Source of the DNA: Anaeramoeba ignava BMAN
Taxonomy: Eukaryota > Protista > Anaeramoebae
Assembly: GCA_028826165.1 (NCBI GenBank)
Contig: JAPDFW010000147.1
Span: 496,001-560,000, forward strand
Length of the DNA stretch: 64,000 nucleotides
Direction: 5' to 3'
Positions 10,798 to 25,801 of this stretch are shown piece by piece. Both the position numbers and the translations under genes were made by a program. The notes under the pieces are model-generated. The model did no database searches. It was not told the DNA's origin and saw nothing but the letters and a program-made list of their open reading frames with translations. Each line of letters starts with the position of its first letter. Position 1 is the first letter of the stretch.

Positions 10798-11504
10798 ATG
10801 CAAGTCTCAATCACATTTTGTGGTGGTAAATAAATAAAATTAAAATTAAAATTAAAATTAAAATTAAAATTAAAATAAAAATTAATATTAAAATTAAAAT
10901 TAAAATTAAAATTAAAAATTAAAATTAAAATTAAAATTAAAAAATTAAAATTTAAAATTAAAATTGAAATTAAAATTAAAATTAAAATTAAAATTAAAAT
11001 CAATATAAAAATTAAAATTAAAATTAAAATTATAATTAAAATTAAAATTAAAATTAATATAAAAATTGAAATTAAAATCAAAATTAAAATTAAAATTCTT
11101 TTAAAAATTAAAATCAAAATTTAAAATTAAAATCAAAATTAAAATTAAAATTAAAATTAAAATTAAAATTTAAATTAAAATTAAAATTAAAATTAAAATT
11201 AAAATTAAAATTAAAATTTAAAATTAAAATTAAAATTCTTTTATAAATTAAATTTAAAATTAAAATAGGATGAGGAATCTACGGTGAATTCCTCTATGTA
11301 GCTAATGCATTAAAAGAATACGGATATAAAGTTATCCCAAAACATGGTCATGGTGGATATCTTTTCGAAGTTCAAGCTGAAGATGGAACTTTAATTTACT
11401 CAAGAAAAAAAACAGGAAGATTCCCAGAACCAGATGACTTAATTGAATTATTACAAGCACACCAAGCAAAATTAGATAAAAAAAAAGAGGAAAAGAAGAA
11501 ATAA
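10798..11504 (+). CDS. SELENOW: Selenoprotein W / Rdx-family selenoprotein (87 aa, CGGU motif); exons 10798-10825 and 11269-11504; Sec TGA at 11271-11273
   Basis: Splicing GT(10826) to AG(11268) gives MQVSITFCGG-U-GIYGEFLYVANALKEYGYKVIPKHGHGGYLFEVQAEDGTLIYSRKKTGRFPEPDDLIELL..., which has the Rdx CxxU motif plus the FEV...LIYS.K..GRFP signature. SECIS lies downstream. Confidence 0.92.
10830..11265 (+). repeat. (AAAATT)n microsatellite filling the SelW intron
   Basis: Direct observation. Confidence 0.9.
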
Positions 11505-11621
11505 ATCAAATCCACTTTTTTTTTAATTCAAAAAAATCAATCAAAAAAAATGCATTAGCTTTCATTTTAAATCATTTTATTTCGGTTTAAATCAAAAATG
11601 TTTTTTTCTTTTTCTTTTTTA

Positions 11622-11690
11622 TTTTTCATTTTCAATGAAGGTTTTATTTTAAATCAATTGACGAATAAAACCTGATAATTAATGGAAAAA
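11622..11690 (+). promoter_or_regulatory. SECIS element in the SelW 3' UTR
   Basis: Helix I TTTTTCATT/AATGGAAAA; core ATGA at 11635-11638 with GA at 11674-11675; helix II GGTTTTATTT/GAATAAAACC; apical AAA at 11651-11653. Confidence 0.9.
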
Positions 11691-11856
11691 AATAAAAGAA
11701 AAGAAAAGAAAAACAAAAACAAATCAAAAAAGCGAAAAAATTTTTTCATTTTCATTTTCATTTTTTTCATTTTTTCCTCATTTTTTTTTCTGTTAATTTT
11801 TTAAAAAAATATAATAAAAATAAAAATTATAATAATAATTATAATAATAATAATAA

Positions 11857-14800
11857 ATGCAAAATCCAATATTTGCAAAACCTTTATTTAATTTTGAAAC
11901 GAAAATTGATACATTTCTTCAATTAAATACAAATGAAAAAGTATTAATTTTGAGAGAAGATCATCCTTTTTGTTTTTGTTATTCAATTGAAAAAGAAAAA
12001 GAAGGACTTATTCCTTGTAAAAAATAAGATTTAATTTAATTTAATTTAATTTAATTTAATTGATTAATTGATTAATTGAATTTTTTTTTTTCGAAATTTT
12101 CATTTTTAAAGTAAATTATCTTAAAATCATATCAAAAAGCAAAATTCAAAACAAAAACGAAAAAAAAACAATGAACGAAAAACTGAAAACATCAATTAAG
12201 ACATCTTCAGAACTTCGAAAAGAATTGGAAAACAAAAACGAAAAAAAAGGATCTTCTTTATTTGAATATTCCGACACATATCATGGACAAAAAATAGTTC
12301 CCGTTTATAAATTCTCACTTCCTGATCAACTCCCGGCATTTCCAATAGAATTATCATCAAATTTTCAAATACAAGGAACTGTTGGAGATTGGAAACAACG
12401 ATGGGTTGTTCTTGAAAACAATGAAATACGATATTATAAAAATAAAACATCACTTAATCAACCTTTATATAATTTACCCATTAAAGAAATTTTCGATGTT
12501 GTTATCAAAACCCCAGATGCATTTATTGATGGAATAACAACAAAAACTCCTCAAAAACGCAAATCGCTTGCTAAACTTAAGACGGATTCTGATAATTCGT
12601 TCAAAATCATCCTCAAAAATTCATCACTTACTTTCAAATCAAAGGATTTCAATTCTTTATCCGAATGGATTAGTAATATTCATTTTCTTCGCGTTTTGAA
12701 TAGAATTTCAAGCTCAACCGCAAATAAAACAGATTATGCTTTGATCCAAAACCTACTTTTGATTGTCCAACTTACAAAAGGAAAAATCAAAGCGGATAAT
12801 CAAAATAACAATACAAAAGAACAAGAAAAAGAAAATGCGCTGAATTTCTGGGAAAGTTTTTTATTGCTTCAACTTTTTTTATCTCAGAAGGAAGATATTT
12901 CTGAGGAATTTCCCCAAATAACATTCAAAAGAAAAAATACTATTGCGGAAATTAATGAATCCGTAATTTCAGTTACAAATGAATTATTAAATTCAATCAA
13001 TCCAAAAATTCCAAATACACAGAACCAGAACCAGGAACAAAATCAAACACAGCTTCCTGTAGAAAACGAAAAAGAACGCTTAGAACAGCAAAAATTATAT
13101 GCGCAAATAAGAAATCTCTGTAATGCAGAGTACATCGGTTTAACTCTTTCAAATTATCACGCCAAAACCGAAAATGAAATTAGTTATCGTCAATTCGAAT
13201 TAATCAAAATCACAAAGGCTTATGACAATTTGGATTTGTTTTGGCACGGTCATATTTTCTCCGATTCGCAGCCTTTGTGCGGGGATTTCTCACCAAAAAA
13301 TATTGTGTTGATTCGGCCAAATCAGGACAATATTCTTAATTTCGCAAAAATCATTTCGCAAAATTCAGAGAATCAAGAACAAGATATTGCAAGAAATATT
13401 CAATTCCAAAAAATAGGCATTGTTTTCCATCAAGACGGAAAGAAACTGCAGAAATGGAAGAAAAATCTGTTTGTCATTTCATCGCTTCATTTACAATCCT
13501 TCCCACTGCATAACTGCAATCCAAATACCCAATTCCACATAAACAAAATCACATCAATCAATAGAGTTGATACATCCAAAAACGCATCCAAATTCACGCT
13601 AGAAATCATTACCCAAAATCAAGTAATCTCGATATACACTAAATCGCAAGATGCGTTTAATGAATGGCTCAATTCTATCAATTTGACCCTCACTTTATCC
13701 AATATCAACAAGAAAATCATGGATCATCCATTGACAATTTCGCGGCTGATCCAAGACTACCGCAAATTACTTTGTTGGATCTCTTCCAAATTATCTTCTG
13801 CAAATGCATTTTTGATGGGACTTAATAAAATATCGCAAGTTTTGTCTTTCCAATTCACAGAGAAATTCGGCCAAGATGAATCACTACAAAATGATTTTTT
13901 ATCCAATCAAGAATCTTTCCAAACATTCTTCTCAACCTCACTGCAAATGACTGCTCATCTGAACCAAAAATCACTACTTCTACAAATCCAAAAGCGGTTA
14001 CTTCCCAAAATTGCAAGATTGCTTTTCTTGGATTTGTCCGATGACTCTTTTGTTGGATATTTTCTTCAATCAACAAAAGCAAGTCTTTATTCATCATCTA
14101 AACAACAAAATCAACAGCAATCAAACGAGTCTCAAGAAACCGTCGATATTGAAAAAGGCGCGCTTCTTGCTGTCTCTTCGCAATTCAAAATTGAGAAAAT
14201 TGATGATATTCCAAATCAAGTTGATTTTCAATGGAAAGAAAATTCTGTTGTTCGAAGTGAAAAAGAGCATTTTATCATAATTCATCCTTCCAAAAAGGAA
14301 GAAATCTTTCTCGAGCAAAAAACAGCGCCACCTCCAACTCTTCCTCATCTAAAAAGCGCCGAATCACTCAGAGAAAAAAACACGAAAATAAATTCACTGC
14401 GTCACTTTAAAAGAACAGTTAGTATTGATACGCAAAGAAGTGCGAAAAAGAGCAATTCCGGATTACTTCCTAATTCTGAAGATCAAAACCAACCAAATAG
14501 CAATTCTATGGATTCCAAAATGAAAGCCAAATTTCTGTATCTGTTCAATTTGAACAACCTAGTTCATCCCAAAGATATCAGTGTTGCGCTTCAATGCCTC
14601 GATATTTGGAAGAAATCGGAAAATAAAGATCATATGTATTTCCCAACAGAAATATCAACCGTTGGGTTTGCGATGATAAACAAGAAATGGACCCGTTCAT
14701 GGATTCATTTGGTTTCTTATATTTTGCTTCTTTATAAATCAAATTATTCCGAACGTCCCTTCAAAGTATATGATCTAAGAGAGCTTGCTTCCATTAAGCG

Positions 14801-23156: not shown

Positions 23157-23228
23157 TCATAATAAGCTCAAATCAATTTGCCTTAAATTTCTTTAAGGTT
23201 TCCAAAAAGATTTTCATATTCATTATGA
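23157..23228 (-). promoter_or_regulatory. SECIS element (type II, with apical mini-stem) in the thioredoxin reductase 3' UTR
   Basis: Minus strand reads TCATAATGA-AT-ATGA-A-AATCTTTTTGG-AAA-CCTTAAA-GAAA-TTTAAGG-CAAATTGATT-T-GA-GC-TTATTATGA. Helix I, AUGA/GA core, helix II, unpaired AAA and a 7-bp mini-stem are all present. Confidence 0.88.
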
Positions 23229-23395: not shown

Positions 23396-25801
23396 TTAAC
23401 CTCAGCAACCAGTTTTTTTAGGGTCTTTCCCAGATCTTTTTGTAACATCCAAGTTTGTGAAATTTTCAGCACAAGTAGGATGAATACCAAGAGTTGAATC
23501 AAGTTGAGATTTTGTGATACCGCATTTCATTGAAGCGGCGAAACCCTGAATAATTTCACCAGCATTTGGACCGAAATAATGGATCCCGAGAATTTTCTCA
23601 TTTTCCAATTTATTGCAAATGACTTTTATGTAGCATTCGTTTTCAGCGAAATGGGGAAGAGCGAACTCCAAGGGCGTAAAATATGAGTGATAAACTTCGA
23701 TATTTTCAAGTTTGTAAGTTGAAATTGCTTCTTCTTCAGATAAACCAGCAGATCCATATTCAAGTGGAGTAAAAACAGCTGTTGGAATTAAAGAGTAATC
23801 AGTCTTTTGTGTGGAGTCACCATACAGTCTAAATGCAAGTAATTTTCCTTGCGAAATTGCAAATGGTGTGAGTTCGGGACTTCCACTTGAAACATCTCCA
23901 ATTGCGTAAATATTTTTCACACTTGATTGACAATTTTTTTGCGCTATTTTTCCTTCTTTATCAAGTGCGATTCCTATTTTTTCTAAGTTCATTCTTTGTG
24001 TTTGAGCTCTTCGACCGATTGCAGATAAAACAGTGTCGAATTCTGCTTGTTTTTCTTGTCCGTTTTCGATATTTTGGAAACTGACAAGATATTTTGAATT
24101 ATTATTGTTTTGGATTTTCTTGATTTCTTTTAAAACGCTTTTGTGAAGAAATGCAACGCCTTTTCGTGCTAAATTGTTTTGGATCATTTTGGCCATTTGT
24201 TGATCAAATTTTCTTAGTACTTTTGACCGAACCATTACTGAGGTGTCGAATCCTAATCCGGATAATACTCCTGCTGCTTCTAATCCTATATATGCTGCTC
24301 CTAATATTAATGTTTTTCCTGGTGGTGTTGGTAATGAAAATAAATCGTTGCTTGTAATGCAATGTTCTCCTCCTGGTACTTGTGGAATAATAGGTGTTCC
24401 TTTTCATTTTTGAATTAAATTTGAATATTAAATATTGAATAAATTTAAATATTAAATGGATTTGAATATTAAATGGATTTAAATATTAAATATTAAATAT
24501 TAAATATTAAATATTAAATATTAAATATTAATTATTAAATATTAAATAAATATAAATATTAAATATTAAATGAATTTAAATATTAAATATTAAATATTAA
24601 ATATTAAATAATAAATATTAAATAAATATTAAATATTAAATATTAAATAAATATTAAATATTAAATGAATTTAAATATTAAATATTAAATATTGAATATT
24701 AAATAAATTTGAATATTAAATATTAAATATTAAATATTAAATAAATATTAAATATTAAATATTAAAAATAAATAAATATTAAATATTAAATAAAAATAAA
24801 TATTAAATATTTAAATAATAAAATATTAAATGTTGAATGAATTTAAATATTAAATATTAAATATTAAATAAATTTAAATATTGAATATTAAATAAATATT
24901 AAATATTAAATAAATATTAAATGAATTTAAATATTAAATATTAAATAAATATTAAATATTAAATAAATTTGAATATTAAATAAATATTAAATATTAAATA
25001 TCAAATATTAAATAAATATTAAATATTAAATATTAAATATTAAATAAATATAAATATTAAATGAATTTAAATATTAAATATTAAATATTAATTAAATTTA
25101 AATATTAAATATTAAATATTAATTAAATTTAAATATTAAATAATAAATATTAAATATTAAATATTAAATAAATATTAAATATTAAATAAATTTGAATGTT
25201 AAATGGATTTAAATCAATAAGTACCACCAGTAGCAATAACAATATTTTCAGCAGTAATTAATTTAACATCATCTGAACCTTTGCGAACCAATTCAATTTC
25301 ATGTTCAGATTTGAGTCTTGCAAAGAAATTTAGGTAATCAATACCTTTTTGCCTAAGCTTAACTTTATAACCCCAATTCAAAGAACGAATATAACTTTGA
25401 ACATTATTAATCATTAAATTCCAATTATGTTTAGCGTTAATTGGATCAACATCCCATCCATAGAACGTTGAAAAATGGAGATTTTCTCGTGATTGCGCAG
25501 CAGCATGAAGAAGCTTCTTGGGGATACATCCAACGTTTGGGCAGGCTCCCCCTATTCCCCATTTAGATCCCCTTAAAGTTGGTTCAACATAATCCATAAG
25601 TGCTACTTTTGCCCCTAATTCTGCTGCCTTTTGGGAGACTGATAACCCCCCTGAACCTCCGCCTATAACTGCTAAATCATATTGATATCCCCCCTTCTTC
25701 TCGCTAATCTTTCGAAAAATCTTCTTCGTTATTTCTGTTCCTAATTGCTTTTTTATTTCTGTTTTCTTTGTTAATGTCAAATGTTTTCCTGTTAAAAGCA
25801 T
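23396..25801 (-). CDS. TXNRD: Selenocysteine-containing high-Mr thioredoxin reductase (526 aa, C-terminal GCUG) with N-terminal presequence; exons 25801-25225 and 24399-23396
   Basis: FAD-binding YDLAVIGGGSGG, redox motif GGACPNVGCIPKK, NADPH motif ILGAAYIGLE, interface GIHPTCAE. The end reads ACT GGT TGC TGA GGT TAA (TGA at 23404-23402). GT-AG intron 25224-24400. Confidence 0.95.
24420..25200. repeat. (AAATATT)n microsatellite filling the TrxR intron
   Basis: Direct observation. Confidence 0.9.

Follow-up and report, generated by a model that had tools for sequence, protein, structure and literature searches.

A SelW-like Rdx gene of Anaeramoeba ignava with a microsatellite intron inside its redox motif: a probable selenoprotein mis-modelled in GenBank

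We found that a locus in the window (the whole stretch of 64,000 nucleotides of Anaeramoeba ignava DNA that was analyzed, to which positions below refer unless another source is named) is very probably an expressed two-exon gene encoding an 87-residue SelW-like Rdx selenoprotein with the redox motif Cys-Gly-Gly-Sec. This reading is supported because a transcript contig crosses the exon junction, the coding sequence matches the Pfam Rdx model, a SECIS element follows the stop codon, and Sec machinery is present in the genome. The Rdx family, which comprises SelW, SelT and SelH, consists of thioredoxin-fold proteins with a beta-alpha-beta-beta-beta-alpha order of elements.

The coding part of exon 1 (10798-10825, forward strand, 28 nt) begins with an ATG at 10798, reads ATG CAA GTC TCA ATC ACA TTT TGT GGT G, and specifies MQVSITFCG, its last base opening a further Gly codon. 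It is followed by a phase-1 intron of 443 nt (10826-11268, forward strand, GTAAAT...AAATAG), within which Tandem Repeats Finder assigned 432 nt, from 10835 to 11266, to a period-6 microsatellite (TAAAAT/AAAATT; 71 copies, 85% matches). The coding part of exon 2 (11269-11504, forward strand) opens with GA TGA GGA at 11269, the GA completing the Gly codon, and after the in-frame TGA (11271-11273, forward strand) runs through 76 codons to a TAA stop at 11502-11504; stops abound in the other two frames. Read across the junction, the N-terminus is MQVSITF-Cys-Gly-Gly-Sec-GIYGEF, with the TGA at the fourth position of the redox motif, and the translated 76-residue piece beyond it includes YLFEV...TGRFPEP. 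A preliminary description of this DNA had given the same exon and intron coordinates, with TGT GGT G closing exon 1, an intron of 443 nt and GA TGA GGA opening exon 2, and all of these proved correct on direct reading.

Transcript evidence for the junction came from a 256-nt contig, X2, from one public run. Letters 56-255 of this contig align without gaps to 11268-11467. The first 55 letters form a loose end off the genomic stretch 11240-12100 that finishes ...ATAATGCAAGTCTCAATCACATTTTGTGGT, corresponding to the last part of the 5' UTR and exon 1; the last 27 of its 30 printed letters match 10798-10824, after which exon 2 follows. The boundary G is single in the contig and can be assigned to either side. 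The absence of the intron shows that the contig derives from spliced RNA, and its TGA shows that the UGA is kept in the mature mRNA. The preliminary description had named the 10825/11269 junction as the one to look for in RNA and transcripts that splice out the TGA as the contrary outcome; the junction was seen in the X2 contig with the TGA retained, which confirms that a CxxU motif, here Cys-Gly-Gly-Sec, is split by a microsatellite intron. The k-mer depth of the contig was high. It ends at an A-rich run after 11467, and the low-complexity 3' region was masked as repeat in the read mapping. That mapping was confined to 11240-12100, adjoining the microsatellite, and exon 1 was recognized from the loose end of the contig and not from a 'joint' row.

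A second run, X1, a marine metatranscriptome, was discarded as evidence of expression, as it matches only the A-rich coding tail at 90-95% likeness and represents low-complexity noise.

At window position 11352 the X2 contig has an A and the genome a G, which changes GGT (Gly) to AGT (Ser) at the single G of ...KHGH-G-GYLFEV. Allelic variation, a difference between strains or an error of assembly could account for this. A paralogue on C15, described below, also has Ser at the equivalent position.

The preliminary description had held that standard annotation would miss this gene. It is in fact in GenBank, mis-modelled and not absent: the post-Sec piece matched M0811_03540 (hypothetical protein, Anaeramoeba ignava, 76 aa) with 100% identity over 88% of length, and UniRef names this entry 'SelT/SelW/SelH family protein'. 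The M0811_03540 protein passes from MQVSITFCG directly to ANALKEY, which indicates that the GenBank model uses the same donor with an acceptor at 11301/11302, so that the TGA and 11 codons are dropped. The stretch that it calls intron (11269-11301, forward strand, 33 nt) encodes two-thirds of the Gly codon followed by Sec-GIYGEFLYV and is contained in the X2 contig.

If the GenBank product were the true one, the gene would encode a Sec-free 76-aa protein from an mRNA in which 10825 is spliced to 11302 and the TGA is intronic, and this protein would be without the second redox residue and the start of helix 1. The model does stand in NCBI, the AG at 11300-11301 leaves an open frame, and the RNA support comes from a single assembled contig of one run; since rare isoforms are lost from contigs, a minor one could be hidden. 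However, the only transcript contig found has 11269-11301 joined to exon 1, and the C15 paralogue conserves these 33 nt in frame, with mostly synonymous change. The Sec-free product would also be without the family-defining CxxU motif, and the SECIS element would serve no purpose. We regard such a product as very improbable. M0811_03540 is a mis-model of a real gene that removes its Sec codon.

Membership of the Rdx family is safe. The Pfam Rdx model PF10262 matched the post-Sec piece with 27.8 bits, against a cut-off of 22.6, over profile positions 40-73 of 74, in agreement with the SelW/Rdx assignment made at first sight of the sequence. Read across the RNA-supported junction, CxxU falls directly after the N-terminal strand, as Cys-Gly-Gly-Sec; the exons and pieces served as separate queries in all searches. 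The best sequence matches in the PDB were the SelW-related protein Atu0228 (2fa8) and MIEN1 (C17orf37, 2ljk), both with an E of about 0.005. An AF2 model of the post-Sec piece only, built from a five-row alignment, had a pLDDT of 82.9 and consisted of a helix, three strands and a helix, strand 1 being outside the model. The best 12 rows of a Foldseek search with it were small proteins that included the SelW-related 2fa8, 2p0g and NESG Rdx-type or structural-genomics entries, with E-values of at least 0.19 and a TM of about 0.5; these E-values are weak because the modelled fragment is without strand 1. Mouse SelW (2npb) stood at rank 46 with a TMq of 0.50, and no significant sequence-level match to mammalian SelW was obtained. 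The label 'SelW-like' is best read as one of size and motif, not of orthology to SelW proper.

Database relatives were few. An exhaustive HMMER search of 1.84 billion representatives yielded nothing beyond the mis-modelled protein of this gene, its paralogue and a few multi-domain Rdx proteins with weak matches, and a word-index protein search returned only the gene's own entry. The probable explanation is that protein sets mostly contain selenoproteins in truncated or mis-spliced form. No close relative turned up in the metagenome contigs scanned.

A SECIS element lies at 11625-11686 on the forward strand, 121 nt past the stop, where it matched the Rfam model SECIS_1 with 39.5 bits (gathering score 35). 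It comprises an AUGA core at 11635-11638, a helix II of 11 bp, AAA in the apical loop and UGAU on the 3' side, and its fold was more stable than those of all 200 shuffled sequences (z = -3.7). This was the sole gathering-level Rfam match within the window and the top SECIS_1 match in the whole 42.8-Mb genome (E 3e-5). The preliminary description had pointed to a textbook SECIS about 120 nt after the TAA, and both the position and the Rfam score uphold this, but the bare motif does not: ATGA..AA..TGAT occurred 81 times in the window against 88 expected, and in AT-rich DNA it has no statistical weight. As the motif is at chance level, we placed the weight on the covariance-model score, on the position after a TGA-containing Rdx frame and on conservation in a paralogue. 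The element presumably lies within the transcript, in its 3' UTR.

An AATAAA at 11665-11670 forms part of the 3' arm of helix II. Used as a poly(A) signal, it would set the end of the mRNA just past the SECIS.

The chance frequency of the bare motif would fit a locus at which UGA terminates translation, leaving a decaying pseudogene or a 10-residue peptide and a hairpin that is a chance structure in AT-rich DNA, and the evidence for the selenoprotein reading is at the level of DNA and RNA. Speaking against termination are the rank of this hairpin as the best covariance-model match in the genome, the open downstream frame of 76 codons beside two stop-rich ones, and the high k-mer depth of the transcript contig. 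Further evidence on the same point came from the paralogues.

A six-frame search of the genome with PF10262 found three Rdx genes, those in the window, on C15 and on C71, in all of which the CxxU motif contains an in-frame TGA and a SECIS or SECIS-like hairpin follows downstream; the Pfam Rdx scores of the two paralogues were 31.6 and 55 bits. The SelW-like copy on C15 (C15:57418-55613, reverse strand) has a 28-nt exon 1 that encodes MKVIITYCG plus G and ends at a GTAAAT donor. Its intron has the same position and phase, is 1533 nt long and holds a different AT-rich microsatellite repeat, and its acceptor (...AAAATAG) is followed by an exon 2 that opens with GA TGA GGT.

The post-Sec proteins of the C15 and window genes are 62% identical. 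By the Nei-Gojobori method, pS was 0.52 and pN 0.23 over 60 codons, which corresponds to a dN/dS of about 0.3 at a dS of about 0.9, and in the nine codons taken as intron by GenBank pS was 0.79 and pN 0.29. Such an excess of synonymous over non-synonymous differences is typical of coding sequence under purifying selection. The C15 gene also has a SECIS_1 match (26.4 bits), in which AUGA, AAA and UGA are identical to those of the window SECIS while helix II differs by three compensatory (double) changes and one G-C to G-U change. Both the dN/dS value and the compensatory changes count against a decaying gene with a chance hairpin. The database model of the C15 copy, P0002 (163 aa), places its acceptor 6 nt further on, so that only the Sec codon is spliced out, and, past the true stop, reads on into additional sequence; this model is probably mis-annotated as well.

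The C71 paralogue (C71:143338-143559; L007 1498-1731) is intronless and begins MNVHIEF-Cys-Leu-Val-TGA, which gives CLVU. In the six-frame search it matched PF10262 from position 1 to 74, across the TGA, with 66.3 bits. Its downstream hairpin, at about L007 1840-1900, combines AUGA/UGA with an AAAA bulge and a mini-stem in a type-II-like SECIS fold, and obtained no Rfam score at E up to 1. Another small ORF begins about 250 nt beyond this hairpin.

Since the intron before the Sec codon is shared by the window and C15 genes at a dS of about 0.9, despite the complete replacement of its microsatellite contents, we considered whether it is kept by selection and not by accident, which we think unlikely. 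The intron leaves the UGA within the first five bases of the last exon, downstream of the only junction. Were it kept by selection, such a placement would protect the transcript from nonsense-mediated decay of the junction-dependent type during slow Sec decoding; alternatively, a junction-bound factor could be coupled to UGA recoding.

The genome also encodes factors for making and inserting Sec. A tRNA-Sec was found with 70.3 bits in Rfam (gathering score 47) and was called tRNA-SeC with anticodon TCA by ARAGORN, and a genome profile search found SepSecS with 404 bits. The gene for SPS2 (SelD; C64:1028999-1030481) has at least three exons and carries a TGA at the catalytic KG-U-xCK site (KMKG-TGA-SCKLPQ); it is itself a selenoprotein gene, and it is likely mis-modelled in the annotation. 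On C24 we found a multi-exon eEFSec gene with G-domain and C-terminal pieces, including eEFSec domain IV, whose PDB matches are only human eEFSec (7zjw_E, 5izk_A) and archaeal SelB; the top match to the selB model TIGR00475, on C78, is EF-1 alpha and was rejected as eEFSec. A candidate PSTK, a KTI12 paralogue on C118, scored 73.8 bits with the eukaryotic PSTK model, which is below the equivalog cut-off and better than its match to the KTI12 model, and a clear KTI12 was located separately on C83. In an L7Ae-domain search of the genome SBP2 was not identified: the matches were of ribosomal or snoRNP type, among them those on C130 and C55, which look like eL8 and an NHP2/SNU13-type protein, together with one borderline 579-aa protein on C73 that has no SBP2 match in the PDB.

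The preliminary description had proposed that this organism has a working Sec machinery and had listed the genes to be sought, the absence of tRNA-Sec or eEFSec being the outcome that would speak against it. Both are present, and together with SepSecS, the Sec-containing SPS2 and the PSTK candidate they support the proposal; from its list, SBP2 was the factor that was not identified. With this machinery added to the evidence from the hairpin, the frame, the paralogue and the transcript, termination at the UGA appears extremely unlikely.

The same genes bear on whether a standard amino acid (Cys, Trp or Arg) is inserted at the UGA, through near-cognate decoding or a variant code. Cys/Sec exchange is common in the Rdx family, and Giardia and S. 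vortens have Cys homologues, with Cys at this position (PMC2874811). However, the A. ignava genome contains a tRNA-Sec, eEFSec, SepSecS and Sec-SPS2 dedicated to Sec, and in all three of the Rdx genes examined the UGA is paired with a SECIS or SECIS-like hairpin. We give decoding as a standard amino acid scarcely any credence and retain the selenocysteine reading.

Elsewhere in the window, a thioredoxin-reductase-like gene on the reverse strand ends, at 23396-23410, in GGT TGC TGA GGT TAA, or Gly-Cys-Sec-Gly-stop, the C-terminus of animal-type Sec-TrxR. Some 180 nt downstream (23172-23217, reverse strand) is a candidate ATGA..AAA..TGAT hairpin, which obtained no Rfam score at E up to 1.

Expression of the SelW-like gene would then proceed as follows. 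Splicing takes out the 443-nt microsatellite intron, joins 10825 to 11269, and leaves the UGA near the start of the last exon. As in the established eukaryotic pathway, the SECIS past the stop would recruit a SECIS-binding factor and eEFSec carrying Sec-tRNA(Sec), and the UGA would be decoded as selenocysteine and not as a stop, with Sec inserted at that position. The Cys...Sec pair may then cycle between selenol/thiol and selenenylsulfide, as has been proposed for Rdx proteins, and the protein would act as a selenol/thiol oxidoreductase. A role in redox or oxygen defence is plausible in this anaerobe, and such roles have been ascribed to Spironucleus selenoproteins in the literature.

Anaeramoebae were reportedly placed as sister to parabasalids by Stairs et al. 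in 2021. Anaeramoebidae are listed as a metamonad clade (PMC10703272), which settles one half of the earlier suggestion that Sec machinery would be notable here if the organism is a metamonad. The other half is weakened, as Sec was already known in metamonads. Spironucleus barkhanus and S. salmonicida were reported in 2010 to have a UGA-containing SelW1 together with SelB, SelC and SelD (PMC2874811), and the Sec pathway is present in the Preaxostyla Monocercomonoides, Paratrimastix and Trimastix, while Trichomonas and Giardia do not use selenium (PMC6759080, PMC10703272). In A. pumila two tRNA-Sec genes have been found and selenoproteins inferred (2026 preprint). A literature search for a list of Anaeramoeba selenoproteins found no paper.

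With the present gene, Anaeramoebae have an explicit selenoprotein that is supported by a transcript and whose SECIS is canonical and scores in Rfam. Together with the Sec machinery, SBP2 aside, this gene indicates that the lineage keeps the eukaryotic Sec system, and it fits the view that Sec was lost secondarily in Trichomonas and Giardia. It will be no surprise to specialists, who have known SelW1 in Spironucleus since 2010 and Sec pathways in Preaxostyla. It also corrects the public gene model, and that of a paralogue, both of which splice the Sec codon out, and illustrates cleanly how gene predictors can avoid a Sec codon by splicing. It is of use as a correction to the annotation; the phenomenon is not new.

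Among the closest known systems is SelW (SELENOW/SelW1 of animals, algae and Spironucleus). The Anaeramoeba protein shares with it a small single-domain form of about 87 aa, a CxxU straight after strand 1 (here CGGU), the FEV...G-K/T-L-I-x-S-K/R-K...FP block, and a SECIS in the 3' UTR, where the element presumably stands here as well. One difference is that an intron splits the redox motif of the Anaeramoeba gene. For Spironucleus SelW1 no canonical SECIS was detected (PMC2874811), whereas the one described here is canonical and scores above the Rfam threshold. Atu0228 (2fa8) and MIEN1 (2ljk), the best PDB sequence matches and top structural matches, belong to the same Pfam family, PF10262. 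Bacterial SelW-related or Rdx proteins and MIEN1 have CxxC and do not depend on a SECIS in the eukaryotic manner; the one sequence of this kind that was read, P0007, has YCTGC, a CxxC in contrast to the CxxU of the Anaeramoeba gene.
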